The notes under the pieces were generated by a model. The model was not told the DNA's origin and made no database searches. It was given only the letters and a program-made list of their open reading frames with translations. This document shows positions 5,628 through 27,118 of a DNA stretch of 64,000 bases, piece after piece (within the stretch, counting starts at the first letter, position 1; every line of letters starts with the position of its first letter). Source of the DNA: Heteronotia binoei (lineage: Eukaryota); NCBI RefSeq assembly GCF_032191835.1, contig NC_083240.1, positions 29,326,001-29,390,000 of the forward strand, written 5' to 3'. The position numbers and the translations under genes are program-made.

Positions 5628-8580
5628 CGCCCTCAGGAGCGGGGCTCTAAGGCTGCATTTTTTGGGTGTTTTTTTTTTTTAAAAAACCCTCATCTTTATA
5701 GCAAAACATTAATTATTATTTAACTCTAACTGAAAGAGTGGAAGAGGACATGGGGGAGCAGTGGCCCAGGCTTTGTTTCTGGAAGGGGAGAAGGTTTAGC
5801 GTGGGGAGCAAGAAATCGGTCAGAGAGAGAGATGTGCAGGACACTGGAGGGTATCAAAAAAGTCTGACCTCATTCAAAGCTAAGTAATACTCACCATATC
5901 TTTCCCCTTTCCTTAACCTAACACACTTCTCTTTCTCTCCTCTCCTTCCCCTGCCCAGTAAAGAAACATATTACTGTTACGGAAGTAGCTGCCGGAGACC
6001 GTGCTTCCCTCCGTCCCCTTAAAATATTTTTGAGCGAAGCCGTTGAAGTCTGCTCTCCTCTCTCCATCCCAGCTCACACCCCCCACCCCTACCCGTGACT
6101 GATCACACTGTATTTAGCTAGATGGCAAACAGGAAGAATGGGGTATACTGTGCTGTATAAATATTTTATATTAAAATATGGATTTATTTGCAGGACACTG
6201 GATCTAGGTTGGGTTCTGTAGCTCAGTGCTTGTTTTGTACCTGGTACATTGATGTGGTTGTTTGTTTGGAAGAGCTCAGTTGCCCTTGGAGACAGAATGA
6301 AGGAGAAGGGTGCAAATGACAAAAGGAACTTAATCCATAAAGAGAAACCAGCATTGGATCTGGGGAAACGTTTTCTTAAGAAGACCTGGGTTAGTTTGTT
6401 TGCTGTAAAACAGGAAATGCACATTTCAAACAAAATCATCCATCTTCGACAAGTGGTGCTTTCAGCCGGCGACTCGTGTTCTAGCTGAGCTGAGCCCTCT
6501 GGCCCTTTGCCCAAAGCACATTCCTCTTTCTAGTCACACCGGGGGTTGCATGTAAAGCATTTCCATTCACCCCAGCCTGAGTGGTACATTCTTGAGCCCA
6601 CAGGATTGTGTTCCAGTGAAAGCTGGTGACTCTGTACGGATTTTTTAAAATGAGACTTGTGTGAAAGAAAGGATGGGTGGGGCCTTGGTGCATGACCCAG
6701 GGCAGTGCTTGTTGCACTCCTATCCTCACAACTAGCTGAACAGCGGCCGTGCATTGCTGCTGGTGTGCTTTTTACAGAGGGAGCTGTGGCTGTGAAAACA
6801 TTGGCCTGCATGTTGCCCCCCCTACCCCCCACTTTCCGTTTTCCTGCCAACCCCAAACCCGGCCATGCATCCTTCACACTGATTTTCTGAAGACTGAGTC
6901 TAGTGGAGCGCATGGGGCCTCCCTTGTCAATCATGTTGAGGATCTTTGGATCCTTGCCCAAGCAACTGTTGAGCAAAATTCCATTTTGTACGTCTTATTA
7001 ATGTAAACAGGAGAGAATTCTCTTTGAACACTTGTGTTTGGCAAAGGGGCCTCGATTTAGCTGGATCTTCTTGGGCTTGGACATCTTTGGCTTTTCAACC
7101 GCAGAAGTTCTTTAGGTGTCCCCCCCACACACACTTTTTTTTTTGTAAGAGATTTTTTTCTGCATAGAACCTAGTATAATCCTCATAATTGCAAGCAGTC
7201 AGAACAGAATGAATTAGGATCAAATTGCTGGAATCCACCCTCTCTTTATAGCTGCTAGTGAAGGGGGGGGGGGGAGTATAGCAGTAACTATAAAACCAAA
7301 ATAACAAGGTGAGGAAATCTGTTAGTTGTGAAGAACACTTGGGTAGTTTGTTCACATTAAAGATCAGAAAACAGGTAACTTACTCTAACGCATTGCTTCC
7401 ACAAGGTTTTTTTTTAAACTCAATTACCTGGGGGGGGGGGGGGGTTCTGTAATGAATTTCCAGTTGTTGAAAGCCATTGGAAGCCAACTTCTGTCCTTAC
7501 ATCATATTCCTTTTGACGCTTCAGCGCTGCTAAATCGTTAAATTGATGGAGGAGCAAAGGGTGGGTGTAGAAACTCCCATGTGTCTCCTGTGAAGTGCCA
7601 GCAGCTTTATTTAACCACTTGGGGCTAAAACTAAGTTGATTGAGTCTGGTTAGTAGGGAACTGGCCATACAGAATAGAATGAGAGCAGACTACATCTTAT
7701 GAATACAGGAACGGCTGCGGTGGCACTGGGGACTCCAGTTACTGCTTAGTAGCTAAACTCTTATCCACTCTAACCTGAAACCCCAGGACTGAGAGGGGAA
7801 ATAGAGCAGCAAAGTTAGATTGAAAAGCATTTGGGGGTCTTACATTCTGGCAACAGAGCTTGATGACATAATAAATGCAGGAGTCTAGACTGGTTATAGA
7901 TATGCAGGCTGAAGAATATTCACAGCTATTCCAAAAGGGGAGTATTCTGCTTGGAGTATGATTAACTTTCAAAGTGAAACGTGGGCTTAAATTAATTATG
8001 GACTTGAGTCACATTTCCATTAAAAGACTTAATTTGTACCATCCAGCTTTACAGCTCCAGCAATTGACTGTAACTACCACAACGTAGAGTAAAAACACAG
8101 CAACCCTTCCTGATCAAGGACCACGGGCCTGTGTGCAAAATGTACTGGAGGGGAAAGCCTGCAAGTTTTAACTCTGTTCTATATACTTGTACAGTCGATA
8201 TGTGCAAAAAAAAAAAGAATCTTACAGCATGTCTGTGACCTTGTTATTGCTAACAGTTAACTGTACCCCTTCCTTTACTTCAGTGGTCTGCCTATATCTT
8301 CTTTCAAGAGGAGAAAGGGAACTCGCCTATCTAGTCCTGTTAGGGTTTGTTTGGGGGTTTTCCCTCCCGCAAAATAATAAAAATCAGCCTGTTACAGTCC
8401 AAACTGAACTGTTTGGAACCAATTCTGCATTCCGATGAACCAAGCTGCTGGTGTCCTGTGAAACTGTGGATGTAGAACTCTCCTGTCTACTGAATTCAAA
8501 AATGTAACCATTCGTTAACTGTATTGGAGGTGTATCCTTAAGAAAGTGTTCCAAATTAAAGGAGGAAAAAAGCTAACGAC
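5628..8580 (+). other. RABEP1: Probable long RABEP1 3' UTR
   Basis: Nearly repeat-free ~3 kb after the stop, ending at ATTAAA 8555-8560; the 3' end is inferred. Confidence 0.5.
8555..8560 (+). terminator. Candidate RABEP1 polyadenylation signal ATTAAA
   Basis: Variant hexamer at the end of the repeat-poor region. Confidence 0.4.
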
Positions 8581-9138
8581 AAGTATGCATCTTCTCCTTT
8601 ATGTTCTGCATCTTTGTCCTGTAGGAGACTTACACGTTTCTGTAAGGATCACAGATGGAGGGAGAGATTTTGCACAGAGGTGTTTCAGATCTTGTCTATC
8701 TGATCAGTTGTGCTATGTTAACACTGCAGCCCCATCTTCCTTGATGCATTTGGAAGCCGGGAGGGGGGGGGAGAGATGACTGAGCAATGCTCAAGAATTT
8801 CCACTCAAGAAATGTTTGCTCACAAGATTCCACAGCTTAGAGGGAACATTGCTCACACAAGAAAAAAAACCTTCGGGATGGAATGGTCCAGGTACCTACA
8901 TATTGGCTTTTAGAACCAGGCACACCCTTTGGTTTTCAGAGTATCTATGCTTTAGCGAAGGCTTATGTCAGCAACAGGGAGATGATGAGGGCCTGGCCAG
9001 GCAGCTCAGGTGCAAGGCCATAGACCCAAGCAAGGCTAATAGTCCAGAGAGAAGTTATGCCAAAACTGTATCCATCTTTTCCTGCCCAGAGAACACAGCG
9101 CCTCATCCTGAACTGTCCAAAGCACTTATCAAAAAATG

Positions 9139-9144
9139 TTTATT
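9139..9144 (-). terminator. NUP88 polyadenylation signal AATAAA
   Basis: tttatt on + strand, 70 nt after the NUP88 stop. Confidence 0.65.
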
Positions 9145-9213
9145 CAATGTGATTTTTTACAAAACACCTCAATACGTGAGGCAGCAAGACCAGTTATAAA
9201 TAAGAAAAGGTAG

Positions 9214-9277
9214 CTAGAAGTTGACGTGGTTTCGGATGTCATTGATCTGTTTCACCATCTCCCGTATGTGTTCTCCC
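9214..9277 (-). CDS. NUP88: NUP88 exon 17
   Basis: [23 protein letters not shown]. Confidence 0.96.
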
Positions 9278-12200
9278 CTGCAAAACAGAAGCCACGTTCA
9301 GCAAACAAGGCAAGAGAATCTTTTTCTTCTGCTCGGGTGTACTGCAAGTTTTGGAAGATTTGCCTCCCAGCCCAGATGTGGACAAAATGGAACCCCTCCC
9401 CAATATAAGCTTACTGGGGACTTCTATTGCTGCAGGAAATAAAGGGGAGAGCGCCCCAATTTTTCCTGCAGCTTCCACTCTCTGCTCAGCCCATCTGGTA
9501 ACAACCAGCATGCAGTGACATCACTCAAAGTCATGTCAGCCTTTGCTGTTTGGGGAGATGGCCTGGCCAAATTACAACCCATTAAGTACTCTGGCAAAAG
9601 ATGAGATGGCTGAACAGCATTACTGATGTCACTAACATGAATTTGAACAGACTGCGGAGGATGGTGGAAGACAGAAGGGCCTGGCATGACTTGGTCCATG
9701 GGGTTGCAAAGAGTCCGACTCAACAACAAGTATTCCAAAGCTCTGGAAGAAATGACTCTGTGTCTAACTTACTCCTCTTTCAAAACAGCCTGGATGCATT
9801 TCCGCTGGTAGGCACTGAGGCTGATACTGGGCTTCTGGGGGCTGGTTCCCTTCTCCATTTTCCTCTGCTGATAATCCTTCTTCATCTTAACCTAGAAAAC
9901 AAGAGGCAGGCACAAGAGCTAGACCTCCTCAGGGGCAGAACGTGAATTCGGTGCCCTGAATTCCACTGCCCACAGCCCTCGTCTTCAAGGCTATTCACTC
10001 ACCTGCTTGATAGCATTGCCTAAATGGCGCAGCTGCTCCTGGATGGTCTGCAGTTCCTTCTTCATGTCTTTCTCACTGTCTGACAGCACGGGCAGCTGGG
10101 AGTGGACACTACGGAGCACTTTCTTCATCCTGGGGCCATAAAGGGAGGGATGCTTGGGTAAGGCTATGCTGTGAAACCAGTGTTTGTCAACCATGTAGCC
10201 CAGCATTTAAAAGCACAATGTGTTCAGCCAGCAGATACAAAAAAATAGAAGTCTTGCTTCTGGTTGTTGCTAAGCTCTGCTCTCCATCACAGAATCACAG
10301 AGTTGGAAGAGGCCATACAGGCCATCTAGTCCAACCCCCTGCTCAATGCAGGATCAGCCTAGAGCATCCAGCCGCTTGTGTTTGTCCCGCCGCTGCTCAA
10401 AGACTGCCAGGGAGGGGGAGCTCACCACCTCCCTCGGTAGCTGATTCCACTACTGAAGAACTCTTACTGTAAAGAAAGTTTTTCCTGATATCTAGCCAGT
10501 ACCTTCCCACCCTTATTTTAAACCCATTCTTGTGAGTCCTCTCCTCTGTTGTCAAATCAATAGAAACAGTTCCCTGCCGGCCTCCTCTAAGTGACAGCCC
10601 TTCAGATACTTCAAAAGAGCCCCCTTCTCCATTAGTCCAGGTGGGACGGTACTCAAAAGTAAAACCAAATCCTCTGCAGTGTCACTGGCAATCGGCTGGA
10701 CGCAGAAATGTTGAGATCTAGGTCAATGGCCCACGGGTTTAGCTGCCTTTACCTGTCTACAATGTCTTCTTGCTTCTCTTTGGCTTCTTCATACTTCTCT
10801 GCTAAGCGCTCAGCCATTTCCCGCAAACTCTTCCTTTTAGGGGGAAAGAGGAAGTGCATTCAATAATTTTGGAACTTCCATCTTATGTGATTTAGGTCGG
10901 GCAAGGGGAAGACTAAAGAGCAAACTGTATCATAACCCCGGTAATTCATACATGCCCTTGTGGCATAAGTGCAACTGGAACTCTAGTTAAGTCATGCAGT
11001 TTGCGTTTATTCCACCTTCTGGAGGAACACTCTTTGAAACAGGAAAGTGCCCATCTGGGCCAGCATGGTCTATACTGACTAGCAGCAGTGCTCTCCAGGC
11101 TCTTTCAGAGGGGAATGTCCCAGACATCTACCCAAAATCCTTTAACTGAAGATGCCAGGGACTGACCCTGGGGCTGTCAGCATATAGAGCAGTTTATCTG
11201 TCATTGGGTTTCAGCCCCTTTCCTGGGACCACTGCTCTACTCATGCAGTGCAAACTCATTCTGCGGCGGTTCTTGCTGGAAAAAGGCATTGTATCAACTA
11301 ACCTTTCTTCTCGGCAATAGCCAAGATCTTCCAGCTGTTTCTTTTTCTGCTCGTGCAACAATTTGACTCTGAAAAGAAAAAGCCAGGTGGGCTGGTTAGA
11401 CTGAACGCAGCGCACATGCCTGCTACATCCTCCCCTCACTAGCAAGTGTTGCTATGAACTACTGAAACCTCAAGGAAAACAAGGTTACAACAAGGCTCCA
11501 GTCCACAGGGAGGAAGCTTCCACAAAACCATCCCCTAATTGTTCACCAACGAACAACAGAACTTTCTCTACTAACTGATTTGGGAGGGACTGTGGCTAGA
11601 GCCCTGGGCCAGCCAGGGAGGCTGCGTCCTTTCATGCCCCTCCTCAGATTTAATCCTATAACCTGAAACCAGTGAGCCTCTTCACAACACAGATTATTCT
11701 TGGCCAGGACATTTTTTGCTGGAGATTCTCAGTGCTTGTGTTTTTCATGTAAAGCCAGTGGATTAGAAAGCCAAAAGTTACCATCTCAGTGGTGAACAGG
11801 AGACCAAAAAACCCAGACTTGACTGCATTTAGGAGCAACTTTTGCTGTTGGGGTTTTTTTTTACCTCCGTTGGATCTCCTCTAAGGCCAGATCTTGTTTG
11901 AGAATATATTCTTTTCTAAACACTTGTGTTGCTCTGCTAACAAGCTGGAGGCATTCTTCAGGAGGTGGGGAAGTTTCTTTATCTGCAGCCCTTAAAGACA
12001 AATATAATAAGATCTTAGTACACACACGCACTCCAATAATTCACAAGCTACATGATGCTTTTTTCTGCCTCTTAGGATTCAACAACTGTTGTGGATGTGC
12101 AAACTGCAACTCATGCACGTTGGTGATCATTCAAACCACTGAGTTGCTGTTCATGAACAATCATTTTGCAATAAATATGTTGAATTATGCTGCCCAGTCT

Positions 12201-15200
12201 AGTATTCTACTCCCTACCCCCAGGTCAATTATGCCAGCAACAGATCAGCAAAATTAGGCCTCAGCAAGGATGCAGCAGTAGGGAAAAACCAGTCAAAAGT
12301 AGCTCCTTTCTTGCCTCTACCAGGTAAATCTTTCTGGAGGAAACTGCAAGGGTTTGGAGAGGGACTGGAGCTCAGTTGGGAGAGCTTCTGCTTTTAGCAT
12401 GTGCCAGCTTGGGTTCCTGGCAGCTACAGTTAAAGGATCTCAGTTGCTGGGAAAGACCTTTCTCTGCCTGAAACGTCAATGCCAGACCAAAGCAGACAAC
12501 ACTGGGCTAGATGAACAATGGTGTTAAAGGTAGACAAGTGCTCTACGAGATGGACAGCTCTCTGGACATGCAACTCCCAGAGCCTAAGTTATAAAGAATG
12601 CTCAGGCAAAGGGGCCTTCTTGGCCATTTGGTGGCCTGCATATGACAGAGGGACCAGAAAGCAGCATGCCCCATCCCTTTTACATTAATTCCCCTCAGAG
12701 AAAAATTCCGTACTTCAACAACAGTGGGTTGGCAGAGCTTCGAGACAGGATCTTTTGGATGTGTCTCTCAAAGGGATCCTGTGATTCAGCCAGAATGCGA
12801 AGAGGAGAGGCTACCACCTGAGAGTCTTCCATGGTACACAGAAGTGGAGGGGATGCTGGGTGGACCGCAGAGCTGTCAAAAGAAACATTACCTACTGGTT
12901 ACTACAACAACAACAAAATTTTATTTGTATCCCGCCCTCCCCGCCGGAGCAGGCTCAGGGCGGCTAACAGCATCATTCAAGTCATAGTTGTACAGAAGTA
13001 AATAAAATTACATTTAATTACATTTAAACATTATAAACATTTTAATTAAAATTCTGATTAGGTTTTAAAAATTAAATTACTGTTCTCCAAGGAGTCCTGT
13101 GCTTTGGTTTCATCAAATTCTTTAGCTGCTGAACCCGTTTCCCATACTAGGTATCAGGGCTTCTTTAGTAGAAAAGGCCCAGCGGGAACTTATTTGCATA
13201 TTAGGCCACGCCCCCCTGATGCAACCATTGATTTGCACAGAGCTTTTTGTAGAAAAAGCCCAGCAGGGGGCTCATTTGCATATTAGGCCACACACCCTGA
13301 CACCAAGCCAGCTGGAACAGCGTTCCTGCTCAAAAAAAGCCCTGGGCAGCAAGACTTGATGAGATCTCCATGAAGAACAGTTGTGAATGGCCAGATAGGG
13401 AAGGATCACGGGAAGGCTAACAAGCCACACAGCTCCTGGTTACAAACAAGGAATAGATCACTGTGGTCCATGTCTGGGGTGTCAAACTCATGAAGGCCAA
13501 ATCTGACGTAAATGAGACCATGCTGAGCCAGGCCATGTGTATCATAAAATGTAATGCCAGGTAGCAGAGAGATAAATTTTATAATGGGCACAAACAAAGT
13601 TTTAAGCTTAAAATAAAAGTTGCTTAAAACATTAACACTCCTGCAGTACTTTGTTTATTTAACTGTCTCTGATAACTGACACCACTTGCTCTGAATAATT
13701 GCATCAAAATCTGGAGACTGTGCTGTAGCAATCTTGAGTATGCTGTTCAAGTGTGTATCTGAGTTGCAAACCTACTTCTTGATTTACTGTCATTCATTAC
13801 AGAAATCTCATGGTCAGTGCTTTGAGCCTAAGACCCATGAAATGGCTGGACATTGCCAGTTTTTGTGCATAAGTTGCTTCATGTGTTGGTCAAGAACATA
13901 TGAAAGCATCATGGCACAGACGGAAGGGTGTTTGTCTACAAAACTATAGTATTCCCCAGAGAAAAAACTGGAACTCTTATGAGATAGTGCAAGAACAGAG
14001 ACACAGCCACATATAGTGTTAAGGATTAGCCTACTATCTGGGAAGCCTAAGTTCAAAATTCCCAGTCTCCACCTTTCAGGCTTGTTGTTACTCTTCATCA
14101 AAAAAATTTACATTGCTTTCCTACTGAGAAAGTCTGGATCATGAGAGAATGAATACAGTGAAAAGGTGGAGGGAGCCCAGTTGCACCCAGGAAAGCCCTG
14201 GAAAAACCAGCTCAAAACAGAGAGGGAGGCAAGGCAAAAAGCTCTTAGTTAACCTGAATAAAACTATGTTGGCTTTAAACGTGCTTTTTGTTTTTCTCTC
14301 TGGGACTGAAGCAGCTGAATAAAGCAGCCTCTCCTCACTCCTTCCCTCTTCCCCAAGGGAGGGGGAGAAGTCTCAGCCAATGGAGGAGTTTGGCTCTGAA
14401 GTTCTGCTGTGTGATTGAGCTGTGCCAGGCTATCTCAATCATACAGCAGAGCTACAGAGCCAAGCTCCTCCACTGGCTAAGACTCCTTCTCTCTCCCTCT
14501 GCCTTGGGGATGAGGGAGGGGGAGAAAGAGCAAGGAGAGGCTGCTTTGCTTGGCTGCCTGAACCCCACAGAAAAACATGAAAATGGCAACAACAGAAGCA
14601 AAAGAGAGGAAGAAGGAAGCAGACCATAGTGGGCCATACAGAAGCCCTCAGGTGGATGGATTAGGCCTGCAGGCAGGACATTTGACATCTCTGGTCTATG
14701 TTGTGTCAAGGAGACACTGGAGGAATTCAAGTTCCATGGAGGCTGATGCTATCTCATCCAAGGATCTTGAAGGAGTGCTGATAAATCTCAAGATTTCTTA
14801 GCTACTTAGAGGAGAACGGGTAAGTTCTCAAAGGACTTTTATAAATGCTGAATTTAGTTTTCAAAGTACAACTCAGGAGGTTCATTAATATTGGTCAATA
14901 ATATCTAAGCCAGAAGTGGAACCTGCCAGTTAGGCGGGGCAAGGTGTGTCTGCTATGTATGATGATGGATTTTGGGTGCTGCTAAGCCCAGAGTCAAACA
15001 AATCTGGCCAATTACCATGGTCCCATTCAACTCCCATTCATTTAATGGTGTTTGCACAGCTTAATTAATAGGAGAGGGATTTGGGATTTATTGCTTCAGG
15101 AACCAAAACTACTCATATCGGTAGGAAAAAATGGAACTATTTTTTTGCCATTTTTACATACTATGTATAATCAACATTAATTATCTGCCCCATGCATATG

Positions 15201-18200
15201 ATATAGTACATTATATGAATGCTCTCTAAATATACTATGTATAATCAACATTCATTATCTACCCCATGCATATTATTAAGTACAATAAAGATTAATGAAT
15301 ACAGATTAGAAATTAGAAATTACAGAATATTTACTACTACATGAATATTATTTAAAACAATAATTTAATGATAGACAATTATAAGATAAATAACCTAGAA
15401 TAAATATTCATGCTTGATAGACTATTTACTGAATTACAGTTAAGTTTATTGCAGTTCATGTGAACTGATATGGCAGGTCAAAGTGGTTCTCTATGTTGTT
15501 TTTTGGGGGGAAACGCTGAGTATTAAAGGGTTAATGAACAAATAAGCTATCTCTGAATTTCAGCAAGGCTAAGATGGAGAGCCAATCATTGGGAGTTGCA
15601 TTCTGGACTGTCCCTTGCAACCACTAACCCTTCCAATCACTGGCAAAGGAATAAGCACAGATCTGATCTAGGATGAAGAAGGGCAAAGGAATAAGCACAG
15701 ATCTAATCTAGGATAAAGAAGGGCAATACGTACAGAAGAGGCTTGGTGATGCATTCGTAAGTACTGGTGAGGCAGACCATGGTGGGGCCCAGAATGTCCG
15801 AGACTATCCAGAACCCTTGAATTGAGGCAGGTTGCCTGGAGGAACAATACAGAGCAAACATCAAACCTGCCACAAAAGCTTTCATAGCACCAATGACAAG
15901 TTAATTATTTCAGTTCATAGTATGGCAAACCCAAATGAGCCCAGGGACATCATAAAAGGCATCAGCCTTCTTTGTCAGAGTCACTGCTGCTTCTCTCTCT
16001 GGCCACACAGTTTGTGCAAGTTACCAACTAAATCTAACCCCAGCCAACTAGGGAGTGGTGCGGCGGCTATCTTTGTTGTCATGTCAGTGTAGAAAACCAT
16101 GATGATCTGACTCACGGCTTCAACAGAGGAGAGAAGCTCACTAAGATGAAATATACGTGCAAAGGCTTTCCTGCACCCATGGGCTGTTCTTATCTGTTTT
16201 ACAGCACATGAGAGGCTGCATCACAGACAAATACAAGAATAGTCTGGGGAAAATTTTACCAACATGTTGATAGTAAAATATTCATAAACTGAAAAACAAT
16301 TTTTAAAAAAACAAGACTTAAGAGCACACTCTACAAAAGTTCCTTCTGAACTGCTTTCCATGTCCCTTCAACAGGAATACATTTCCCCCCCAAACACATT
16401 CATCCAAACCAAGCAAAATAAAGGAAGAAGAGACTTCTCTGCTCCCCTCGGTCCCTAAAACGGGTCCCCAAAGGAGGAGATACTCACACTTCAAGCCCCC
16501 ATCCCTGGCAACAACCGGTTCCCCTTAGTCTCAAGTGCTCTCAGTTCAGGTCCCAGACTGGGTTGTCAGTGGCTGGTCTTCAACTGGCCTCTCCAGGCAT
16601 CATCAGCCCCACCCAAAGGGGAAGAGGCGACATCCCACTTGCTCTTACCTGGATGACAAAGGCATCGTACAAAGGATGTGCTCCACAAAGCATTTCTGTT
16701 CTGCTCCGAGTTCTTGCAAACTATCCTTGTCTTCCTCATCTAAAAAGCAGGTAAAGCTCATTCAGGCATGCAGGGAGGGCACAGCTATCTGGAGTTACAT
16801 CCCTCCCCTTAAAGGACCGGAGCGCTACACATATTCCTGAGAAGCTGCTGCTCAAAGCAAGCACCAGCTCCTCATGCACAGAGAGTAAACACGTCTCAGG
16901 CAGTGTTCCCTCTAAGCTGAGTTAGTGTGAGCCAGCTGTTTTTTAGCCTCCAGCTCACACATTTTTGTCTTCGTAGGGGAGGGACGGTGACTCAGTGGTA
17001 GAGCATCTGCTTGGGAAGCAGAAGGTCCCAGGTTCAATCTCTGGCATCTCCAAAAAAGGGTCCAGGCAAATAGGTGTGAAAAACCTCAGCTTGAGACCCT
17101 GGAGAGCTGCTGCCAGTCTGAGAAGACAATACTGACTTTGATGGACCAAGAGTCTGATTCAGTATAAGGCAGCTTCATATGTTCATATGTCTTAGCTCAG
17201 GAAAAATAGCCCCAGAGCGAACTAAGTTATGCAGCAGCTCACAAATTTAATGCCAGTAGCTCACAAAGTAGAATTTTTGCTCACAAGACTCCAAAGTTTA
17301 GAGGGAACATTGGGGTGAACCAAAGCTGGGAGCTTAAATTGTTGGGCGCAGGGGTCACTTCACAAAGGTTTCAACTGCCAGCTAGTAGAATAATACAAAA
17401 GTGAGGGTAAACTTCAGATGTTCCTGACTCTTGGGCACTTCAAGAGCATCTGCATAAAATCACAGATGGAAGAAACCAGCATTTGATCTAACAGTTGTAT
17501 AAACAAGATTCCTTATGATGGCTGCATGCGCCTCTTGCATTACTGGCACTAACTGTTCAAAAACATGACCTGGAAGCCTGAATGTGGGTATATATTTCCG
17601 TATGGGTCTTTGCATGTGTCTCCTGGTTTTGAATCCCAGTATTGGGATCAAGATCTACCCCATCCCACTCCTGCAATTATTTAAAAAAACACACACACAA
17701 AAACAGAAGGAAGTTTTAACTGCTTACCTGAACCAAGGAACTTGTGCAGTTTGTGGATCCAGGTGAGCCCAACACTATGTACACCAGCATCATGTGTACA
17801 GTGATAGCGAGATGGACACTTGGGATCTGAAAGCACAGGAAGATTACAGGTGAGTGGAGGTGCCAGGCAGGGGAAGGCTGTATTCAGATGCCATGGCAGG
17901 CTGAATTTGCTCAGACCTGGTTTGTTGCTTCTTGCTGCGTAAGCATGCCTTGCTCTAGCCCTCCCACACAGAACGCGATATAAGAACCCTGCTTTAAAAC
18001 TAACTTCAGTGATCCACAATGAAGCAGTGCAGGTGCACCGTTTAACCATCTGCCAAAGTGAGGGCTTCTAGCCAATCCAGGCTTAGAATCTCTGCTTATA
18101 GAAGGAAAATTAACTCTGATCATAATGCAAGAAGGGTCTGTGGGTGCAGAGGCAGTCACGCTACAAGTCTGGGACTTTCCTGTGAACTCAAAACAAGAAG

Positions 18201-21200
18201 CAAGTGTTCTGTAAGGAACCCAGAACAGTAGAGCTGTGGACAAACCAGCCTCTCTGAATCAGCCTTTACAATGATTCACACAAGCAACCATTCCTTCCTG
18301 ATCAATAACATTGTGTGGCAGGTGACCCATCAATTGCTGTTTTCGGAGCTTCCACTATGAGTCCCTGCTTCTGTTTTGTCCTGCCTCTACTGAGCCAAAA
18401 GGCCACTTGGAGCTTTAAGTATTTCAAAATGGAAAAAGAGATGCCACTCTCTGACTGGTGCAGCTTTGTATTTTAGCTGGGAGGGAGCTGGCCACAAATT
18501 CAGAAGGCCTTTCTTTCTGGCATGCAGATGGGGCATCTTCTCAGGGACACAGGTACAGCCGCCAGAAGGGCAAAATGACTGAGGTCATCAGCTGCCGCCA
18601 AGAAAGGCTTCCCTGTGCTCCCTGCCTCAGTCTGTCTGGTGATGTAGGCTACCAGGCACCCCGGCCCAGTTTTTCTCATCTTCGAGGCAACTTGAATGAA
18701 GAGTGAAAAGAACACAGCAGACGGACCATATTCTTAGAGCAAAGGGACGGCAACGGAGGTCACACCTTCCACTCCTTACCTCTGTGCAATTTGATTGGGC
18801 AAGAGAAGTCCAACTCCAGAGGCTCCTCCCCCTTTCTCGGGGCCAATTTCAGGGCAAGCTCCAACTCAATGCATTCAAAGACGTAGAGTGATGGGATGAG
18901 GTCCGTTTTTGAATCCCAGGATTTGACAGACTGTCGAAGAGATGTGAGTGTTAACCCTATCACCCTCCTTCACAGTGGCATAAGAGTTAACTTCTCTTCG
19001 GAAGAGTCATTCATGTAAGTTACAAGTGATTTCCAACTGCCTTAATTTTTCTTTAGCCAAAAGGTTGGCTTGTATAATAAATGGTGTGTAGGGAGGGAGA
19101 CAACCTCTACACTTAACTGGTTGGCTTTTTAAACTCCAAATATACATTAGTTCATGGCTTGAAGTACATCATGGAGTTGTTTGTTTGTTAAATCAATCCC
19201 AGATACAAGAAAAAAAATTACGAACATACATTTTGATATTCACTATATATTTTTCAGCCACTTATTCTGAGCATCCATGTATAAAATGCCAGAGAAAATA
19301 TTTTTAAAAATGAGAATGCAAGCCTAATAGTTACTTCCAGGTCCTCCCTTGGGTCTCTGGCCACTTCTGAAGGCGCAAAGTTGGATGCTTGCCTCTTCCT
19401 GTTTCCAGGGGTAGCAAATGCTAGGACTAGAAACAGAGATGGAGTTCCCCAAAACTGGCAGTGAGCCAGGTGAGCCTGCTCTTAATGCCAGCTCTTAATG
19501 GCCCTTGGCCTGTTCAACCCATTGGTCGGGAGCAACAGCCAATTAGCTGATGCTGCAGTCTGATAGGCTGATATTCCTGACACACTGCCAAACAGCTTCA
19601 AGACTGGATGAAAGGCTCCTGCAGGCTAGGTGTGGCCTTCTGGGCCATGATTTGTCCATCTCTGACGCAGGAAGCAATGACTGTTGGAAAGGCTCCAATC
19701 TTGGCTTCTAACTCAGTGATGCAAACCAGCCTCTCCAACTGTCATCTAGTTTGGAGGACCAAAGCAGATATATTTTATTTATTTATTTATTCTGCTTATA
19801 TCCTGCCCTCCCTGCCGAAGTAGGCTCAGGGCGGCTTATGCTCCATAAACGTCATATAAAAACAAGTATGAACATAAACCGCAAACATAAAAAAATATAA
19901 AAACATAACACAGTATCAGGTGCCATTTCAATCTTAGAATAGCAATACATTAGTGTGTTGATAACGGCGGATAGCTGCCAGTTCATTCTGTGTTAGATTA
20001 TGTGATGGCAAACTACAAAAGTAACCTGAGAGAAGGGAGCATGTGTACATGATGCATGGACGTGTGTGTGGCCAAGCTATGATTTGGAGTTGCATGTAAA
20101 ATTTATGTTGTTTCTGGAGACCACTGAGTGAAGCAATACCACTTCATTTGCTTACTCAGCCATTCCTGTTTTTATTAAGCCACTTCAAACTCAGGATGTA
20201 AACAAAACTAAAATATCAGAAAAGGGATAAGGATGTCTGACAGCAATGAGCTTTTGTGCTGTATGTTCAAGACAGCCCAGGTAAAAAGGCCAGCAGTACT
20301 TAAAGACCTAGCAAGGACCGAGTCCTGCATAGGTATATATAATATGAAGTTCCGTCCCTCCACAAAGAAAACCTGCAAGGGATTACAGCCATACCGTCTG
20401 TTCGTCGTCATCTTCCCCCTCCAGCACCACACAGTGATACAGCATTCCTGAATCGGTAGCAATGACCAAGATGTTGGGAATGCAGGGCAGGCAGAGGACC
20501 GCACAGGCATCATAGCCATAGTTGTCTTCAGCTGCAGGGTGCATCGGCAGTGGGCCCAACAGCTTGCCGAGGTTTCTGGTGCTGGAATAAACAAAAGGGA
20601 CGTTTACCGGGCAGCCGTTTCATTACAGCTGTCCCCCCCCCCCTCAAATAGCAGGAATCAATTTGCAACAACAGAGCTATTTCTCTACTAGAATATCTTG
20701 GATATCTAGAACATGAAAAATGGAGCTTTTCTTCCTGTAAAGAAGTTCCATGCAAGAAATTATTGCATGCTTATCTCAGAATGGACTGCTAACTGCAGTT
20801 TTCCCTTCCTGGTTGATTCTCATGTATCAGGAATACTTTCTCTTTAAGCCATTGCTCTAAATAGGCCAGAGGTGGCCTACAGTGTAATCCTAAGCAGAAT
20901 TACTAAATGCATTGTTTTAAATGCTTGCTGCCTAAGATCAGATTTTGCTTTGTCTTTTGCCACCCTCAATTTCCAGGCACATCCAGTTTCTGGTCAACAC
21001 TTCCACCCTCTCCCCCCACCCCTGCAAAAAAACCCAAAAAACCACAGTGGCAGCTGCCAGAAATGCACAAATAAATTTTCCATCTTTACCTGTGCAGTAG
21101 ACTGAGGTAGGTCAGGAAGGTCTCCCCATTTTCGTACAAGATGTAGAGCGGGTATGCCAGCACTTCTTCTGCTTTCTCTTGCTGCCCGGTTATGTTCCTG

Positions 21201-24200
21201 GGAATGGCTGCCAGGGGCCCAAAGTCAAATGCCACGGCTGTCTCCCCTATCAATGCCGTATAGGCTCTCCTGAGAGAGGGGGGAAAGGCTAGAAATTTGG
21301 CTTGCAGGAGCCGTCTGCCGCAAATGTAATTTCCTCATTGTGGAAAGGATGGGGAAGGGTTTTGGGTTTTTTTTTGCCAAAGCGAAGAGGAAAGCATCCA
21401 GATCTTACCCTTTATTGAGACTCAGAGCCTCCTCATCAGTATTTGAAAGAGTGATCATTTTCACGGCTGTCTGGGGTGAATTCAAGCTGTAAATCCTAAA
21501 GCCCAAACAATATTTTAAAAACCACCCCGTAAGTGAGCCTCCCATAAGAATTTTAAAAATCAGCAACCAGGGTGCGGGGTGCACCCACAGCTAGAATATT
21601 TCATATGTATTTGGAGAAATCGCCCCATTTGTGGAACAACACAGGATATTTTAACGTGTACTGAACATCTGCTGGCACACGCCTCCTATGCGTGTGTTTT
21701 GGTACAGCTCACTTGCGCCTGATGAACTTACAACTGCAGAAACTGGGCCAGCCTCTTCTCAAGACATGAGTCTTGGCTGCGTTATCAAAGGAACCTTTAA
21801 AGTGAGACATACTTTAAAGGGAGACATCAGAGCCAGGTATGTACCTGATTGTGTTGTCAGAAGTTAGGAGCACTATGTGGGGTTCCAGCATCTCACTTGG
21901 GTACCAGGCGGCATGCTTCAGTGTCAGGGATGTCGAGCTGGTGAAGAACCTCTCTGCAATAGGAATGGTGCTAGAAGAGAGATTTCATAAATAAAATGGG
22001 ACAGTATTTTGTGAGCCAAACGGAGTTGTCAGTTTTTCTAAAGAGCCCCCGTACAACTGTGCTATCCCCAACGGAGTGCTGTGCAGGCAATAACTTTGTG
22101 CTGCAGGAAGGTTCATCTACCATTTTTTGATGATCCAGCTGCTTTTAAAAGCACAAGAGCAGGTGAGATTGCATTTTTTTCTGAGCAGCCGGCAACCCTG
22201 TCAGCAAACAGACTAAACCAGTTGTCAACAATGTTCCCTCTAAGTTGCAGAGTCTTGTGAGCAAAAATTCTACTTTGTGAGCTACTGGTATTAAATCTCC
22301 TTCCTGAACTAAGACAAAGATGTGTGAGCTGGAAGTTAAAAATCTGTGAGCTAGCTCATGCTAACTCAACTTAGAGGGAACACTGGTTGTCAACACACAC
22401 AAAAATGGCCACAACATGGTGCCCAGCGGTGCCAAGAATAGGGTACCATATTACCTCCTACTTTTTTCCCACAATTAGAAAAAAAAAGAAAAGAAATTAA
22501 ACCTCTGCCGAAAACTCTTCTCCCATCACTCAGCAGCATGTCAAGTACATGTGGCCAAGCACATAACACTAGTTTTGACTAAATCTGCCGATCCTTCCGA
22601 AGAAGAGCTGCACACCTTTCTTCCCAATCCCAAAACAAAAGACAGGAGCTGCATCATGAGAGTCTCCTGACACAGCCTCACACAAAAGTGATCTTTTACA
22701 CTGGAGAAATCAAGGACCAAACATGAGGCCAACTGCCCACAAAGCACATTGCTTCATAAATGGTAGCAGAATGTCTGAACTGCCTGCACTGAACAGGACA
22801 TATGAAGCCTCTTTGTGACACTGGATCTGTGAAGGTTGTCTCAGTTGCCATTTGACATCCCAGTCATTAAGTGATGAATGCTGCCACCTCTCTTTTTTTT
22901 TGCTTAAATGAAATCTACTATGGAATAAATGCTGCTTTTCTTTTCATTGACCTACAGCATCTCAAGCACCCTTTCGAAGAGGTATGAAAACAAACTCCCA
23001 CCCCCTAGTGCAGAGGTGGGGAACCTTTTTTCTGCCAAGGGCCATTTGGATATTTATAACATCATTCGCGGACCATACAAAATTATCAACTTAAAAAACA
23101 GTGCTCTGCCAAGGGAGAATGATTCAGGCTGGCAAAATTAATGCAAATAATTGTTTTTCAATTTGAAGTCACGTGGGGAGAGCCTAATTCAGCACATACA
23201 CACAGTCTGGTCCGCTGCCCTAGGCAGATGCCTAGGTCCAGGCACATCCCCTAAAATTAGCGTATTCGGTTGCACACTCATTAGCATATTAGGCCACACC
23301 ATCTGGGATAATCATGTGCAAATTGAACTAGTGGTAGCTGGCTGCCACCCACTCCCCTGCCATCCCTCCCTCCATGTGGAAACTGCAGCTGCTCCCAACA
23401 GACCTTTAAAAGTACCCACATACCCCAGCAGTAGTCCTTCACAATGCCTACCACTCAGGTTCCACGGAGGAAGGGAGGAAGGAAGGAAGGAAGGAAAAGA
23501 AATTAGGGGAAGAAAGGAAAATGAAATGGAGGGAAGAAAGGGTAATAAAGGAAAATAAAGGAAAATAAAGAAATGGGGGAAGAGAGAGAAAGGGAAATAA
23601 AGAAATGGGGGAAGAGAGAAAAATAAAGAAATGAGGAAGAAAGGAAAATGAAGAAATAAGAATAAAGGAGGATAAAGGGAAATAAATAAGTGTGGGGAAG
23701 AAAGAATAATAAAGGGAAATAAAGAACGGGAAATAAAGGGGGGAATGGGGGAAATAAAGGAAACAAAGAAATGGGGGGAAGAAACAGAAATAAAGGGAAA
23801 TAAAGAAATGAGGGGGAAACTTACCTGTACTTTAGCAGTGACTTTTCCAGGCCCTGCAGCGATCCTGGCTGGCCAGCCAGGCCCCAGGGAGGCTACAGTG
23901 TGACTGGGCCCCAAAAATCCCTGCCAACCAGCCAGGCCCTGGGGAGGCCGCTGCACAGTGCAGCTTAGCCACATGATCCCTGCCAGCCAGCTGGGCCCCA
24001 GGGAGGCCACCATGTGGCTTGGCTCGGCCCAGCAATCCCTGAGGGCCAGACCAAGTGATCTCGAGGGCCATAAACGGCCTCTGGCCTGACGTTCCCCACC
24101 CCTGCCCTAGTGGAATGTGCGCAAGTAAAACAGAGTCCCTCCATACGCAGTGTCTACAACTATAAGGATAGCAAAAACCCCAAAGAGAACATACCACGTA

Positions 24201-26666
24201 TCAAAATGGTTTCCTGACAAGTCCAAAGAGAAAGAAGGAAAAGGAACACCAAGTAGCCCTAGTTTTAAAGCTGTCAAAGAAACATGAGAAAACCCGAGGT
24301 GTTACATACCTACAATTAATTGTTGCCCTTCCACCTTCAAATTCAGAGTTCTTTCCCCAACGTTTTGGTAACTCCAGTACTGCTAGCCCTTTTGTTCCTA
24401 TAAGAGCCACATACTGTTGTGTAGGACTCAGTGAGGTTTGGTAGACATCAAAAAAGGGTGGATTTATGCAGAGCAGTGTCTGGAAATAAAAATGCTGAAT
24501 CACTTAACAGTACAACATTTCAACTTTTGTTTCTAAGCAAATAAACGTTATACAATATGAACATATGAAGCTGCCTTATATACTGAATCAGACCCTCGGT
24601 CCATCAAAGTCAGTATTTACTCAGACTGGCAGCGGCTCTCCAGGGTCTCAGGCTGTTTTCTGAGATGACCATAGATTAAATAATTAAACAAGCCCAAACT
24701 AGGGTAGGAGTCTACTTTCCACGAAGCAGGAAAAAGACCAGTGGCTGGACTGTACCACTCCAGATTGCAGGTGGAGTGCTTTTCCATAATTGAAAAACCC
24801 TTCACACAGAAAACTTGCTAATCAGGGCTGAGGCTAGAACCTAACACAAACACTGGCTGCAGGAGCTGGTAGTGTGAGGTCCTTTACACCCAATTATTGC
24901 AACTTAAGTGCAAGCAGTATTTAAACATTGCATTCCCCCCCTCCCATGTTTCAGCTAGACTCCATACAGAAACCCTAACCTTTAAACAGGTCCTTGAGCT
25001 TTACTGAAAACAAACTACAAGGCCTAGCTGCCTTTCCACAAAGTAAAATTCCTTGCACTTAGAAAACAAGCACATCTGGGGACAATGTTCAGCTTTTCCC
25101 TGACACTCTGATTTCCACATTCTAGGAAGAGGGTTTCACATCCAGCTCTTCCCTGCTTTGCTAGTTTCAGTCTGTGTCCTGCAGACCTTTTAAAAAACAA
25201 TTGTTTTGTCTGACTGGCACATTTTCAACATGTGTTTATGGTATCTTTTCCACATTCTTCCACTATGAAATGCAAGGAGTATTCATGGTTCTCTCATGCT
25301 ACATTTTCTCCTCACAATCACCCTGTAAGGGAACAGGCGGGCTGAGCCAGAGTGATTGCCCCAAGATTGCCCAGACAGCTTCATAGTAGGCAGGGCCGGC
25401 CCTAGACTGTCTGGCATCCTACGCAAGGCTAACTTCTGGTGCCCCCTCCCCGCACACAGATGATGTCACTTGACACCCCTAGATGGCTGGCGCCCTAGGC
25501 AATCGCCTAGCTTGCCTAGTGGCAGAGCCTGCCCGGATAATAGGAGAGGGATTTGAACCTGCCAGAGCAGTCTCAAACAGAGTTCTAAGTCCACTGGTGT
25601 CAATTAGAGATGCCAACCTCCGGTAGGGCCTGAGGATCCCCAGGAATGCCAGCTTATCTCCAGTCCAGCCAATAAAAATCAATTTCCAATGGATGTTTTG
25701 GAGGGTGGGCTGTATGGCATTGTACCTCGTTGAGATCCCTGTCCTCCCCAGGCTCCATCTCCAGTCCAGGAGTTTTCCAACCTGGAGCTGGCAACCGGCA
25801 CAGACAAGTGCAAGTTGCAACTTTGTTTAGGATTGCTCTGTGTGTGTCTCTAGTCCAAGAGCGGCCAAACTTGCTTAACATAAGAGCGATATAGAATAAA
25901 CATCAGATGGTTGAGAGCCGCAAGACATGGACGTCAGAGTTTGAGAGCTCGAAGGAAGGCAGGCAGAGGGAGAGAGGGAGGGGGAAAGAAAGCAGCTTTA
26001 AAAGCACTCTTCAAACTGCTGGCCGGCTTGGTTTGGTGAAGTGACTTAAAGAGTCAAATGCCTTTTCCAAGCCAGCTGATGGGGTATGGGAGCTCTGAGA
26101 GCCACACAATATGTGTGAAAGTCGCATGTGGCTCCTAAGGCACAGTTTGGCCACCCCTGCTCTAGTCCTTTACGGCACTGGCTCTTTATATCAAGAATAT
26201 ATCGCTTTGTATGGACAAACCACTACACCAACACGCGCAGGAAGAGAAAACTAGATGGAAGCGAGTGACACCGACATGCTGGCTTTCTACGTGCAGGGGT
26301 TTTGTAACGGAGGCGCTCTGCGGCACCTGCGAGCCCAAGACGGTGGCAGCACACGGCTCCCTCGGGGGCCTCCAGGAGAACCAAGCGAGGAGGCCGCACC
26401 TGGTACCGGCTCAGGCTGTCGTGCTCGCCGCCGCCCAGGCTCCTCAGGCTGAGGGCGTAGAAGGCGCTACGCTCGCCGTCCCAGAGGAAGAGCTCGCCGC
26501 CCAAGCCGAACATCAAGTCCCGCGGAAGCGCCGGCCGAGCCTTCACGTCGCCCGGACCCGGCTCGACCTTCGCGGCCTGCTCCTTCAGGCGACAAATCAC
26601 GGCGTGGTTGGATAGCTCCTTCCGCCAGTGCTCTCCCAGGCCGGGCGCCACGGCCGCTGCGGCCAT
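9214..26666 (-). CDS. NUP88: Nucleoporin 88; complement(join(9214..9277,9773..9891,10003..10129,10753..10833,11303..11368,11865..11990,12714..12872,15734..15835,16649..16739,17728..17826,18780..18930,20395..20581,21090..21269,21409..21495,21845..21970,24310..24479,26400..26666)), 2202 nt, 733 aa
   Basis: 17 GT-AG exons join in frame without stops; motifs [67 protein letters not shown] and C-terminus [20 protein letters not shown]. Confidence 0.98.
9598..9728 (+). mobile_element. RTE/Bov-B-type LINE 3' end
   Basis: Encodes [38 protein letters not shown] (RTE ORF C-terminus) and ends GCAAAGAGTCCGACTCAACAACAA. Confidence 0.8.
9773..9891 (-). CDS. NUP88: NUP88 exon 16
   Basis: [11 protein letters not shown]...[15 protein letters not shown]. 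Confidence 0.95.
10003..10129 (-). CDS. NUP88: NUP88 exon 15
   Basis: [27 protein letters not shown]...AIKQ. Confidence 0.95.
10289..10625 (-). mobile_element. CR1 LINE 3' end
   Basis: CACAGAATCACAGAGTTGGAAGAGGCC...CATCTAGTCCAACCCC typical CR1 3' terminus. Confidence 0.8.
10753..10833 (-). CDS. NUP88: NUP88 exon 14
   Basis: [26 protein letters not shown]. Confidence 0.94.
11303..11368 (-). CDS. NUP88: NUP88 exon 13
   Basis: [21 protein letters not shown]. Confidence 0.94.
11865..11990 (-). CDS. NUP88: NUP88 exon 12
   Basis: [41 protein letters not shown]. Confidence 0.95.
12714..12872 (-). CDS. NUP88: NUP88 exon 11
   Basis: [13 protein letters not shown]...SPLRILAE...SSANPLLL. Confidence 0.94.
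13155..13344. mobile_element. hAT-like MITE family B (TIR CAGGGCTTTTTT) with internal duplication
   Basis: Termini cagggcttcttt / aaaaaaagccctg; two copies of ATTTGCATATTAGGCCAC. Confidence 0.7.
13474..13765 (-). mobile_element. 3' terminal remnant of an autonomous hAT (transposase C-terminus + TIR)
   Basis: TIR ctggggtgtcaaactca; reverse strand reads ..[35 protein letters not shown], resembling hAT dimerisation-domain ends. Confidence 0.65.
14288..14580. repeat. Long inverted repeat (foldback), loop 14420-14433
   Basis: Inner arms 14394-14419 and 14434-14459 pair at 23/26; similarity extends to about 140 nt per arm. Confidence 0.85.
15100..15520 (+). pseudogene. Probable NUMT of the mitochondrial control region 5' (TAS/ETAS) domain with a 74-bp tandem repeat
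   Basis: TACATACTATGTATAATCAACATTAATTATCTGCCCCATGCATAT..AGTACAT repeated at 15158 and 15232; downstream ACTACATGAATATT and TTAAGTTTATTGCAG; very AT-rich. Confidence 0.68.
15642..15726. repeat. 40-bp tandem duplication
   Basis: ggcaaaggaataagcacagatct(g/a)atctaggat(g/a)aagaag x2, 2 mismatches. Confidence 0.95.
15734..15835 (-). CDS. NUP88: NUP88 exon 10
   Basis: [28 protein letters not shown]. Confidence 0.94.
16649..16739 (-). CDS. NUP88: NUP88 exon 9
   Basis: [24 protein letters not shown]. Confidence 0.94.
16901..17312 (+). mobile_element. hAT MITE family A interrupted by a SINE
   Basis: TIRs cagtgttccctctaag / ttagagggaacattg; split at tttttgtctt|agctcagg. Confidence 0.88.
16972..17187 (+). 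mobile_element. Young Squam3-like SINE nested in the MITE
   Basis: Flanked by TGTCTT (16966-16971, 17188-17193); intact A/B boxes. Confidence 0.88.
17728..17826 (-). CDS. NUP88: NUP88 exon 8
   Basis: [32 protein letters not shown]. Confidence 0.96.
18780..18930 (-). CDS. NUP88: NUP88 exon 7
   Basis: [29 protein letters not shown]...FSCPIKLHR. Confidence 0.95.
20395..20581 (-). CDS. NUP88: NUP88 exon 6
   Basis: [38 protein letters not shown]. Confidence 0.96.
21090..21269 (-). CDS. NUP88: NUP88 exon 5
   Basis: [19 protein letters not shown]...[16 protein letters not shown]. Confidence 0.96.
21409..21495 (-). CDS. NUP88: NUP88 exon 4
   Basis: [28 protein letters not shown]; phases fit neighbours. 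Confidence 0.9.
21845..21970 (-). CDS. NUP88: NUP88 exon 3
   Basis: [39 protein letters not shown]. Confidence 0.96.
22229..22385 (-). mobile_element. hAT MITE family A
   Basis: Exact 8-bp TSD gttgtcaa. Confidence 0.9.
23011..24104. mobile_element. Non-autonomous hAT sharing termini with the 29594-33758 element
   Basis: TIRs cagaggtggggaacct / acgttccccacccctg; exact TSD ccctagtg; internal purine-rich tract 23460-23820 and GC-rich ~55-60-bp repeats 23860-24040. Confidence 0.92.
24310..24479 (-). CDS. NUP88: NUP88 exon 2
   Basis: [31 protein letters not shown]...INC. Confidence 0.96.
25391..25535. mobile_element. Small MITE (CAGGGCCGGCCCTAG termini) inserted in an old SINE
   Basis: cagggccggccctag...gcctagtggcagagcctgccc; MIR-like SINE halves on both sides. 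Confidence 0.55.
25604..25797. mobile_element. MITE with (TAGGG)TTGCCAAC...GCTGGCAACC termini
   Basis: Same family at 44412-44560 and 44670-45011 in the MIS12 intron. Confidence 0.6.
25856..26159 (+). mobile_element. hAT MITE family C (TIR CAGGGGTGGCCAAAC)
   Basis: Exact TSD ctctagtc; same family at 45856-46115 and 58019-58262. Confidence 0.88.
26400..26666 (-). CDS. NUP88: NUP88 exon 1 (coding part)
   Basis: ATG 26666; MAAAAVAPG...[10 protein letters not shown]...RYQ|GTgcgg. Confidence 0.92.
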
Positions 26667-27118
26667 CGCTGCGTCTGAATGAAGAGAAAAGTTTGTTGCC
26701 GAGAGGAGGCTGAACAAGGTAGGCCCCGCGCCGCCTCAGAGCGCGGGACTACATGTCCCAGACATCACCGCGCGAGCGGACTCTTCAAGACTATAAGATT
26801 GCTACCAAAAATATCTAAGGTTATGGTTAACACCATAGAGGTATATAGATGGACAGCCACGCCGTTACTTGAAGACAAACGACAGTTATCGGGCCAGCGC
26901 TAGTTCTTTCGAACCCCTCCCCCAAACGGAACGGCTCTTTCGCAGACTTCAATTCCCATAATGCAACGGGGTTCCGCTACCCGAAAGGAGGTGCTTCCCA
27001 TCATGCATCGGGTGCTGGAGTGCTTGTGCTTGACTACATTTCCCAGTGTGCTTTGGGCAAGAAGAACCAGCGGGGAGGAGAGGGCGGCAAGAGCAGCAGC
27101 TGTGCGGAGCTCGCGGTT
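26667..27118. promoter_or_regulatory. NUP88/RPAIN bidirectional CpG-rich promoter with four ZNF143 (SBS / ACTACA-TCCCA) motifs
   Basis: 452 bp between divergent ATGs; ACTACATGTCCCAG 26748, ACTTCAATTCCCATAATGCA 26946, TTCCCATCATGCA 26995, ACTACATTTCCCAGTGTGC 27033. Confidence 0.85.

Follow-up and report, generated by a model that had tools for sequence, protein, structure and literature searches.

A probable mitochondrial control-region insertion, with its 74-bp tandem repeat, in intron 10 of Heteronotia binoei NUP88

Intron 10 of the Heteronotia binoei NUP88 gene contains an A+T-rich, internally repeated island, and the question is what this island is and where its repeat was made. The original prediction took it for a NUMT from the TAS/ETAS end of the control region, complete with VNTR units. 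Our analysis of the window, that is, the whole 64-kb stretch of DNA surrounding the locus, agrees with this identification. With a probability of about 0.86, a ~290-bp fragment of the H. binoei mitochondrial control region, including its VNTR, would have been copied into NUP88 intron 10, where it would be carried as a neutral NUMT. Period and copy number, the literature on the gecko 75-bp box and RNA contigs from a close relative all point in this direction.

NUP88 lies on the minus strand, as seen from a collinear exon chain of Pfam Nup88 matches. The tenth coding exon (exon 10, 15734..15840, minus strand) corresponds to profile positions 428-465, and exon 11 (12698..12872, minus strand, with only the 5' end at 12872 fixed by the splice junction) corresponds to positions 467-510. 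We also used outside contigs from two public runs, referred to as X1 and X2. A 1.7-kb contig from these runs sits on exon 10 only, and its loose ends consist of exon 9 and exon 11 sequence, which places the 3' end of exon 9 at 16654. Since this NUP88 contig joins exons 9, 10 and 11 in spliced form, the runs are RNA-seq data, and the 3 to 4 differences over 167 NUP88 exon bases show that their source is a close relative. The Pfam chain and the spliced contig ends define intron 10 as 12873..15733 (minus strand, 2861 nt), confirming the host intron already named for the element. On the right, 299 nt separate the element from the donor site of exon 10. Exons 10 and 11 flank the element on one contig and the spliced mRNA skips it, so its location is nuclear. 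A search for the exact products of the two open reading frames adjoining the element found no record.

The core of the element is a direct repeat. The repeat search recovered two head-to-tail units with a period of 74, at 15158-15213 and 15232-15287, with 89% identity over 56 nt, in accordance with the predicted 74-bp period at 15158/15232. A third copy follows in register at a spacing of 75 (15329-15363, 77% to the reference core). On the plus strand, the array thus comprises unit 1 (15158..15231), which carries ACTATGTATAATC, CCCCATGCATAT and GTACAT; unit 2 (15232..15305), whose first 56 nt resemble unit 1 and whose 3' third is divergent; and a degenerate third unit (15306..15379), followed by a 55-nt unrepeated tail of the ETAS domain (15380..15434). 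Compared over their whole 74 nt, units 1 and 2 are 77% identical, units 2 and 3 are 65% identical, and units 1 and 3 are 59% identical. The array at 15158-15379 was missed by Tandem Repeats Finder, probably owing to the low number of good copies, about two, and to the differences in their 3' thirds. The 21-mer ATACTATGTATAATCAACATT occurs at just two sites in the 64 kb at up to 3 mismatches (0 expected), one in each good unit, and CCCCATGCATAT is likewise confined to the array, so that the array strings mark a single locus in the window.

The composition of the island also sets it apart from the intron. Region 15148-15434 contains 42% A, 35% T, 14% C and 8.7% G (A+T 77.4%), while the 300-nt flanks on either side have 59-60% A+T and 23-24% G, and the edges between them are sharp. 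This G-poor, A-rich bias is the one reported for the mitochondrial L strand; the L-strand-like sequence is the plus strand of the window, antisense to NUP88. TACAT occurs at 15155, 15207 and 15338, and ATGTA at 15163 and 15237. The proposed TACAT-act-ATGTA mini-hairpin, a TAS motif joined to its complement, is present at 15155..15167 (plus strand) and is predicted to fold with a 5-bp stem, and the corresponding stem in unit 2 is imperfect (ATATA for TACAT). In a literature string search, the 12 papers found to print CTATGTATAATC or CCCCATGCATAT all concern vertebrate mitochondrial DNA, mostly control-region sequences or primers; the same search found no gecko paper that prints a matching control-region sequence.

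Short motifs of this kind could in principle arise in any A+T-rich intron DNA. TACAT and ATGTA are common, with 62 and 61 occurrences in the window, and the folding energies of the units equal those of shuffled sequences (z = 0.02, -0.87 and 0.10), with only the 5-bp hairpin forming. However, chance likeness to TAS motifs would explain neither a 56-nt repeat at 89% with 21-mers unique in the window nor the sharp compositional edges, and it is effectively refuted by the independent X1 and X2 contigs, which match 15157-15434 (~280 nt) at 86-100% identity; we regard its probability as close to nil.

The same contigs define the limits of the element. Their depth is zero on the surrounding sequence, and the left edge falls between ~15136 and 15157, where the left-flank alignment to the contigs is ambiguous; together with the compositional island, they delimit the candidate NUMT, a copy of the ETAS (5', tRNA-Pro-proximal) part of the control region, at 15148..15434 (plus strand). 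The range of 15100-15520 proposed at first is therefore too wide, as outside homology extends only from 15157 (possibly ~15136) to 15434. The two downstream blocks assigned to the control region are divided by this boundary: ACTACATGAATATT (15336-15349) is retained as part of the degenerate third unit, but TTAAGTTTATTGCAG (15440-15454) lies outside. A MITE bounded by an 18-nt inverted pair at 15025/15584 was also considered and discarded, given the zero outside-contig depth beyond 15157-15434.

By published description, the array closely resembles that of the H. binoei mitogenome itself: NC_010292.1 is reported with an ETAS VNTR of 74 bp in 3 copies (PMC6295329, Table S8), and the nuclear copy has a period of 74 and about three copies, two good and one degenerate. 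Over 59 bp, the mitochondrial VNTR shows 78% similarity to the 75-bp box of Cyrtodactylus (PMC6295329, Table S8). Members of the gecko 75-bp box family are expected to be 55-75% or more similar to that box, and the family is described as tandemly repeated sequence with TACAT, found where the control region begins at its 5' end (Areesirisuk et al. 2018, PMC6295329). In this family, TACAT TAS elements are placed inside the units and the ETAS A+T content is 71-77% (PMC6295329). Judged by the published description, the NUP88 units share the TACAT within the unit and the ETAS-like A+T content, and their start-to-start spacings of 74 and 75 agree with the ~74-75 bp tandem repeat of the family. Their position may also be comparable, directly after a possible tRNA-Pro end and, in the presumed source transcripts, before a CSB-F-like box. 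Stable secondary structure, another family feature, was not found in these units when folding was compared with shuffles, but this is a weak criterion, as PMC6295329 gave no shuffle control. Unlike the mitochondrial 75-bp box of geckos, the NUP88 copy stands in a nuclear intron without the central domain, CSB-1/2/3 or flanking tRNAs.

The RNA behind the outside contigs appears to be polyadenylated and is far more abundant than the transcript of the host gene. Summed X1/X2 depth over unit 1 reaches ~83,000, and individual contigs lying on 15230/15319-15434 range in depth from 254 to 875. For the spliced NUP88 contig of X1 and X2 the value is 8-26, which makes the excess 10 to several thousand times. 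The contigs show one flank type on each side, and beyond 15434 they leave a loose end and continue into a CSB-F-like box that agrees with the published gecko CSB-F consensus at 15/19 positions, a match of only moderate significance (286 of 20,000 shuffles reach 15/19, p ~0.014). From the high abundance and the single flank per side, which are not expected of dispersed repeats, we infer that these contigs are probably mitochondrial control-region RNA.

The alternative is that the island belongs to a nuclear satellite or TE family that resembles the control region or was anciently derived from it, with the outside contigs being transcripts of that family. Unit 1 exceeds the adjoining control-region part (15319-15434) in depth by a factor of 100-300, more than three mitochondrial DNA copies would give, and this can be read in such a way. 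RNA abundance can nevertheless explain the excess, which three unit copies alone would not. A dispersed family would also be hard to reconcile with one locus in 64 kb, with one flank type per side instead of many, with a right flank that enters a CSB-F-like box, and with a period and copy number equal to those of the published H. binoei mitochondrial VNTR. Moreover, the repeat search found no TIRs, TSD or poly(A) tail bounding 15148-15434, and the inverted pair at 15025/15584 lies in zero-depth sequence. A satellite or TE origin is accordingly quite improbable.

The NUMT reading leaves the question of where the array was made, since the original prediction described the repeat as the insertion's own. 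A single unit could have been inserted and later duplicated in the nucleus, and the 89% likeness of units 1 and 2 over 56 nt would in principle fit a post-insertion duplication followed by drift. Against this, the unit 1/unit 2 junction is already present in the outside contigs, which span it at 15160-15238, 15175-15252 and 15209-15268. A 457-nt X2 contig runs unbroken over 15230-15434 with 25 substitutions and 4 indels and shows the order found in the window, with unit 2 followed by the degenerate unit 3 and then the tail, and the mitogenome is itself reported with 3 copies (PMC6295329). We give nuclear duplication very little credence. Because the outside contigs already hold the same junctions and arrangement, the array was most probably inherited from the mitochondrion.

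The state of the third unit bears on the age of the insertion as well. Decay of the inserted sequence had been taken as a sign of an old event, but the third unit is already equally degenerate in what appears, from the contig sequences, to be the mitochondrial source. Nor does the 12-14% divergence indicate age, as it was measured against the fast-evolving control region of another lineage. A young insertion, polymorphic or lineage-specific within the H. binoei complex, is conceivable but rather doubtful.

According to the above comparisons, we propose that ~290 bp of mitochondrial DNA, reaching from the tRNA-Pro boundary or just inside it almost to CSB-F, a box of the central domain, was inserted into NUP88 intron 10 in the Heteronotia binoei lineage. 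The route would presumably be the one usual for NUMTs, in which escaped mitochondrial DNA is captured when a broken chromosome is repaired by end joining. The VNTR would have arrived with the fragment, already made up of two well-kept units of 74 bp and a degenerate third one, with a short tail behind them. Lying antisense to NUP88 and removed with the intron, the NUMT would be a neutral molecular fossil, most likely without function.

Consensus searches for CSB-F, CSB-1 and CSB-3 returned none in the window, and therefore the ETAS domain alone appears to be present; the CSB-F-like box of the outside contigs is absent from the window too. The decayed tRNA-Pro end suggested upstream is not supported: ARAGORN in mitochondrial mode called no tRNA at default thresholds, and lowered thresholds gave 11-18 obviously spurious calls. 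What can be seen is a resemblance of at most ~15 nt, CAAAAAAATAGTTCC at 15133..15147 (minus strand), which we take, going by vertebrate tRNA ends, to be possibly the last few bases at the 5' end of mitochondrial tRNA-Pro. Because sequence from the central domain, the CSBs, the tRNAs and cytb is missing, the suggested confounding of D-loop PCR is improbable except where the two primers both fall inside the 290 nt, and amplification from primers placed in the CSB domain or the neighbouring tRNA genes is unlikely to be disturbed. In metagenome contigs, the pattern of TATGTATAATC followed after a gap of 8-28 by CCCCATG was too loose: it hit at least 120 loci, and in a blastn comparison with 15050-15560 these loci yielded nothing beyond chance matches, 16-65 nt long. 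A tighter 26-base pattern had no matches in viral and prokaryote contigs. Two of the metagenome loci listed are human-gut metagenome contigs and were not taken as human DNA.

Like other vertebrate NUMTs, the NUP88 insertion would be a short piece derived from mitochondrial DNA that lies in a non-coding part of the nuclear genome, shows no TE hallmarks and has no apparent function. It differs from NUMTs in general in being purely control-region sequence with the VNTR kept. Among human NUMTs, D-loop sequence is under-represented, which makes a control-region-only NUMT a less common sort. The 'Lopez' NUMT of the domestic cat, a 7.9-kb mitochondrial segment including the control region that is tandemly amplified in the nucleus, similarly associates nuclear control-region sequence with tandem repetition. 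In the cat, however, nuclear amplification took in the entire insert, whereas in NUP88 a small mitochondrial VNTR would have been carried over at insertion.

The value of the locus lies mainly in annotation, as ~290 bases of NUP88 intron 10 would be recorded as mitochondrial-derived and not as regulatory sequence or a novel family of repeats. A control-region-only NUMT that keeps its VNTR would also preserve, in slowly evolving nuclear DNA, a mitochondrial sequence that itself evolves fast, and it could help to establish the direction of change in the gecko 74/75-bp box. Hybrid parthenogens are well known from the H. binoei species complex, as are mitochondrial duplications, and the NUMT could serve there as a presence/absence marker. 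If the insertion did prove young, and polymorphic or lineage-specific, it would offer a dated snapshot of the VNTR and could be a nuclear presence/absence marker for tracing the parental genomes of hybrid parthenogenetic lineages. On the practical side, short mitochondrial or RNA-seq reads could mis-map onto NUP88 intron 10.

The candidate NUMT is an A+T-rich island on the plus strand at about 15148-15434, with A 42%, T 35%, C 14% and G 8.7% (77.4% A+T); the 300 nt on each side hold 59-60% A+T and 23-24% G. The repeat search found period-74 direct copies at 15158-15213 and 15232-15287 (56 nt, 89% identical) and a third copy, in register, at 15329-15363, 75 nt on from the second. After cutting into 74-nt units, U1 (15158-15231) and U2 (15232-15305) were just 77% identical over the whole unit because their 3' thirds differ, and U3 (15306-15379) was degenerate, with 65% identity to U2 and 59% to U1. 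The array at 15158-15379 went uncalled by Tandem Repeats Finder, whole 74-nt units showed no folding advantage over shuffled sequence, and the studied region is free of N runs. The TACAT-act-ATGTA mini-hairpin sits at 15155-15167, the 21-mer at the head of the units occurs at two places only in 64 kb with up to 3 mismatches allowed (0 expected), and within the window CCCCATGCATAT is confined to the element. The period-74 copies, unique 21-mer and mini-hairpin bear out the tandem D-loop-like array of the original prediction, although its limits of 15100-15520 were too wide.

Most geckos carry a tandem repeat, the '75-bp box family', in the control-region ETAS domain (Areesirisuk et al. 2018, PMC6295329). 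The family bears a TACAT termination-associated motif, the ETAS A+T content is 71-77% (PMC6295329), and H. binoei NC_010292.1 is listed with a 74-bp ETAS unit present 3 times (Table S8, PMC6295329). Compared by published description, the element agrees with the gecko family and the H. binoei VNTR in period, copy number, motif and composition, its copy number being two good units plus one degenerate against the 3 published for NC_010292.1. In literature text, CTATGTATAATC or CCCCATGCATAT led to papers on vertebrate mtDNA in 12/12 cases, mostly control-region sequences or primers; pattern scans of collections free of vertebrate mitogenomes gave chance matches or none. We regard the element, with a probability of roughly 0.86, as a genuine NUMT of an ordinary sort, not described before but belonging to a well-known class. 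NUMTs are understood to arise when end-joining repair of double-strand breaks in nuclear DNA captures fragments of mtDNA; the repeat search found the element bounded by neither a target-site duplication nor terminal inverted repeats nor a poly(A) tail.

Stop-free minus-strand segments, searched one by one against Pfam Nup88 (PF10168) with exons left unjoined, gave a collinear minus-strand series of matches (profile 1-644, window 9991-26735). The segments lie at 26.2-26.7 kb (profile 1-69), 24.2-24.5 kb (66-127), 21.8-22.0 kb (124-168), 21.1-21.3 kb (196-255), 20.4-20.6 kb (265-318), 18.8-19.0 kb (317-369), 17.7-18.1 kb (361-402), 16.65-16.76 kb (402-431), 15.71-15.90 kb (428-465, the tenth coding exon), 12.70-12.90 kb (467-510) and 11.86-12.03 kb (510-551), with more NUP88 exons downstream of the last. 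A putative exon 4 on the minus strand (21408-21590) accounts for the profile gap 168-196; it was recognized by eye (IYSLNSPQ...SLNKG) and gave no Pfam match. Exact-product look-ups of ORFs neighbouring the element returned no match.

Only two small public runs, from one sample of organism A, shared words with 14900-15700, and their contigs, placed on 14700-15900 at ≥80% likeness, fall on two places, NUP88 exon 10 (depth 8-26) and 15157-15434; neither run has contigs on 14700-15150 or 15438-15724. A 1.7-kb contig maps to 15734-15840 alone, with one loose end matching 16654-16683 in exon 9 (0 mismatches) and the other 12843-12872 in exon 11 (2 mismatches). It sets the minus-strand boundaries at 16654 (exon 9 3' end), 15734-15840 (exon 10) and 12872 (exon 11 5' end), and therefore intron 10 at 12873-15733. 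This contig shows a mature NUP88 mRNA from which intron 10 and the element have been removed, and since it is spliced, both runs evidently come from RNA-seq. Exon sequence differs from the window at 3-4 of 167 bases, which makes organism A a close relative and not the same individual. The predicted placement inside NUP88 intron 10 is thus upheld by the Pfam exon chain and the spliced contig, on a numbering of coding exons that would shift with any untranslated first exon. Running antisense to NUP88, the element sits 299 nt away from the donor of exon 10; we saw no sign of function in this intronic, spliced-out sequence.

Where contigs cover 15157-15434, their depths add up to about 83,000 on unit 1; for the first half of unit 2 the sum is 7,000-11,000. 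A 457-nt contig (depth 254) shows 25 substitutions and 4 indels across 15230-15434, a 208-nt contig (depth 875) shows 14 substitutions across 15319-15434, and short contigs at 15160-15238, 15175-15252 and 15209-15268 cross the junction of units 1 and 2. Such placement on 15157-15434 excludes chance resemblance, whose probability we put close to nil. Each side shows a single flank type: the left flank reads ...TTTGTCCACACATACTATATATTTACCCACATC, and the right flank, in both runs, reads CACGTACATACAAGGAGAACCCCGCAACCC, which was searched for in the window and not found, and which agrees with the gecko CSB-F consensus from the literature at 15/19 positions (equalled by 286/20,000 shuffles). These unlabelled contigs are best explained as mitochondrial control-region RNA, because they are thousands-fold over a housekeeping mRNA, have single flanks and run from a TACAT-bearing 74-bp array to a CSB-F-like box. 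The excess depth over unit 1 could also reflect a nuclear satellite or TE family, which is nevertheless improbable: the flanks are single, the sequence continues into a CSB-F-like box, the window holds only one locus, and the element agrees exactly with the mitochondrial VNTR as published. Duplication of the array in the nucleus after insertion is very unlikely, as the outside contigs cross the unit junctions. Rather than being the insert's own nuclear-made repeat, as originally proposed, the array was inherited from mtDNA, since the contigs share its junctions, and in them unit 2 is likewise followed by the degenerate unit 3 and the tail (15380-15434).

The decay read as a sign of old insertion fares similarly: third-unit degeneracy was already in the source and therefore carries no information on age. 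The non-repeated part differs by 12-14% from organism A, a reference that is another lineage's fast-evolving control region, and the insertion could be recent or ancient. CSB-F, CSB-1 and CSB-3 were searched for in the window and none was found; the insert comprises only the ETAS domain. Because it stops at about 15434, TTAAGTTTATTGCAG (15440-15454), taken earlier for a control-region block, is ordinary intron sequence. In mitochondrial mode ARAGORN did not find the suggested tRNA-Pro remnant; only 15133-15147 resembles the first bases of a vertebrate tRNA-Pro, and the left flank aligns ambiguously with the outside contigs. The feared D-loop PCR confusion is also doubtful, co-amplification being unlikely because no primer site lies beyond these 290 nt.

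In organism A, contigs of 74-bp-unit sequence (placed 15151-15273) are 100-300 times as abundant as the control-region sequence next to them and exceed NUP88 mRNA several-thousand-fold or more in the sense of thousands of times. One has a run of at least 22 A after the equivalent of 15198, directly past CCCCATGCATA; this run and the abundance suggest a mitochondrial RNA of L-strand sense that is polyadenylated and ends within the TAS-bearing repeat, a matter of the mitochondrion and not of the NUP88 locus.

Around the element, a 40-bp tandem duplication (15642-15726, 2.1 copies, 95% identical) lies on the intron side, 8-92 nt downstream of the exon-10 donor. A 227-nt near-palindrome at 14321-14547 matches Rfam MIR7533 on both strands (63 and 54 bits, gathering score 230), with nested mir-606/mir-9-like matches under threshold at 14384-14469. 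This intron-10 sequence resembles a hairpin of the MITE type rather than a miRNA gene. In intron 8, ARAGORN called a plus-strand tRNA-Pro at 16980-17052 (anticodon GGG; Rfam tRNA 43 bits), which is more likely a tRNA-derived SINE head than a working tRNA gene because GGG is, to our knowledge, not a usual proline anticodon in eukaryotes.
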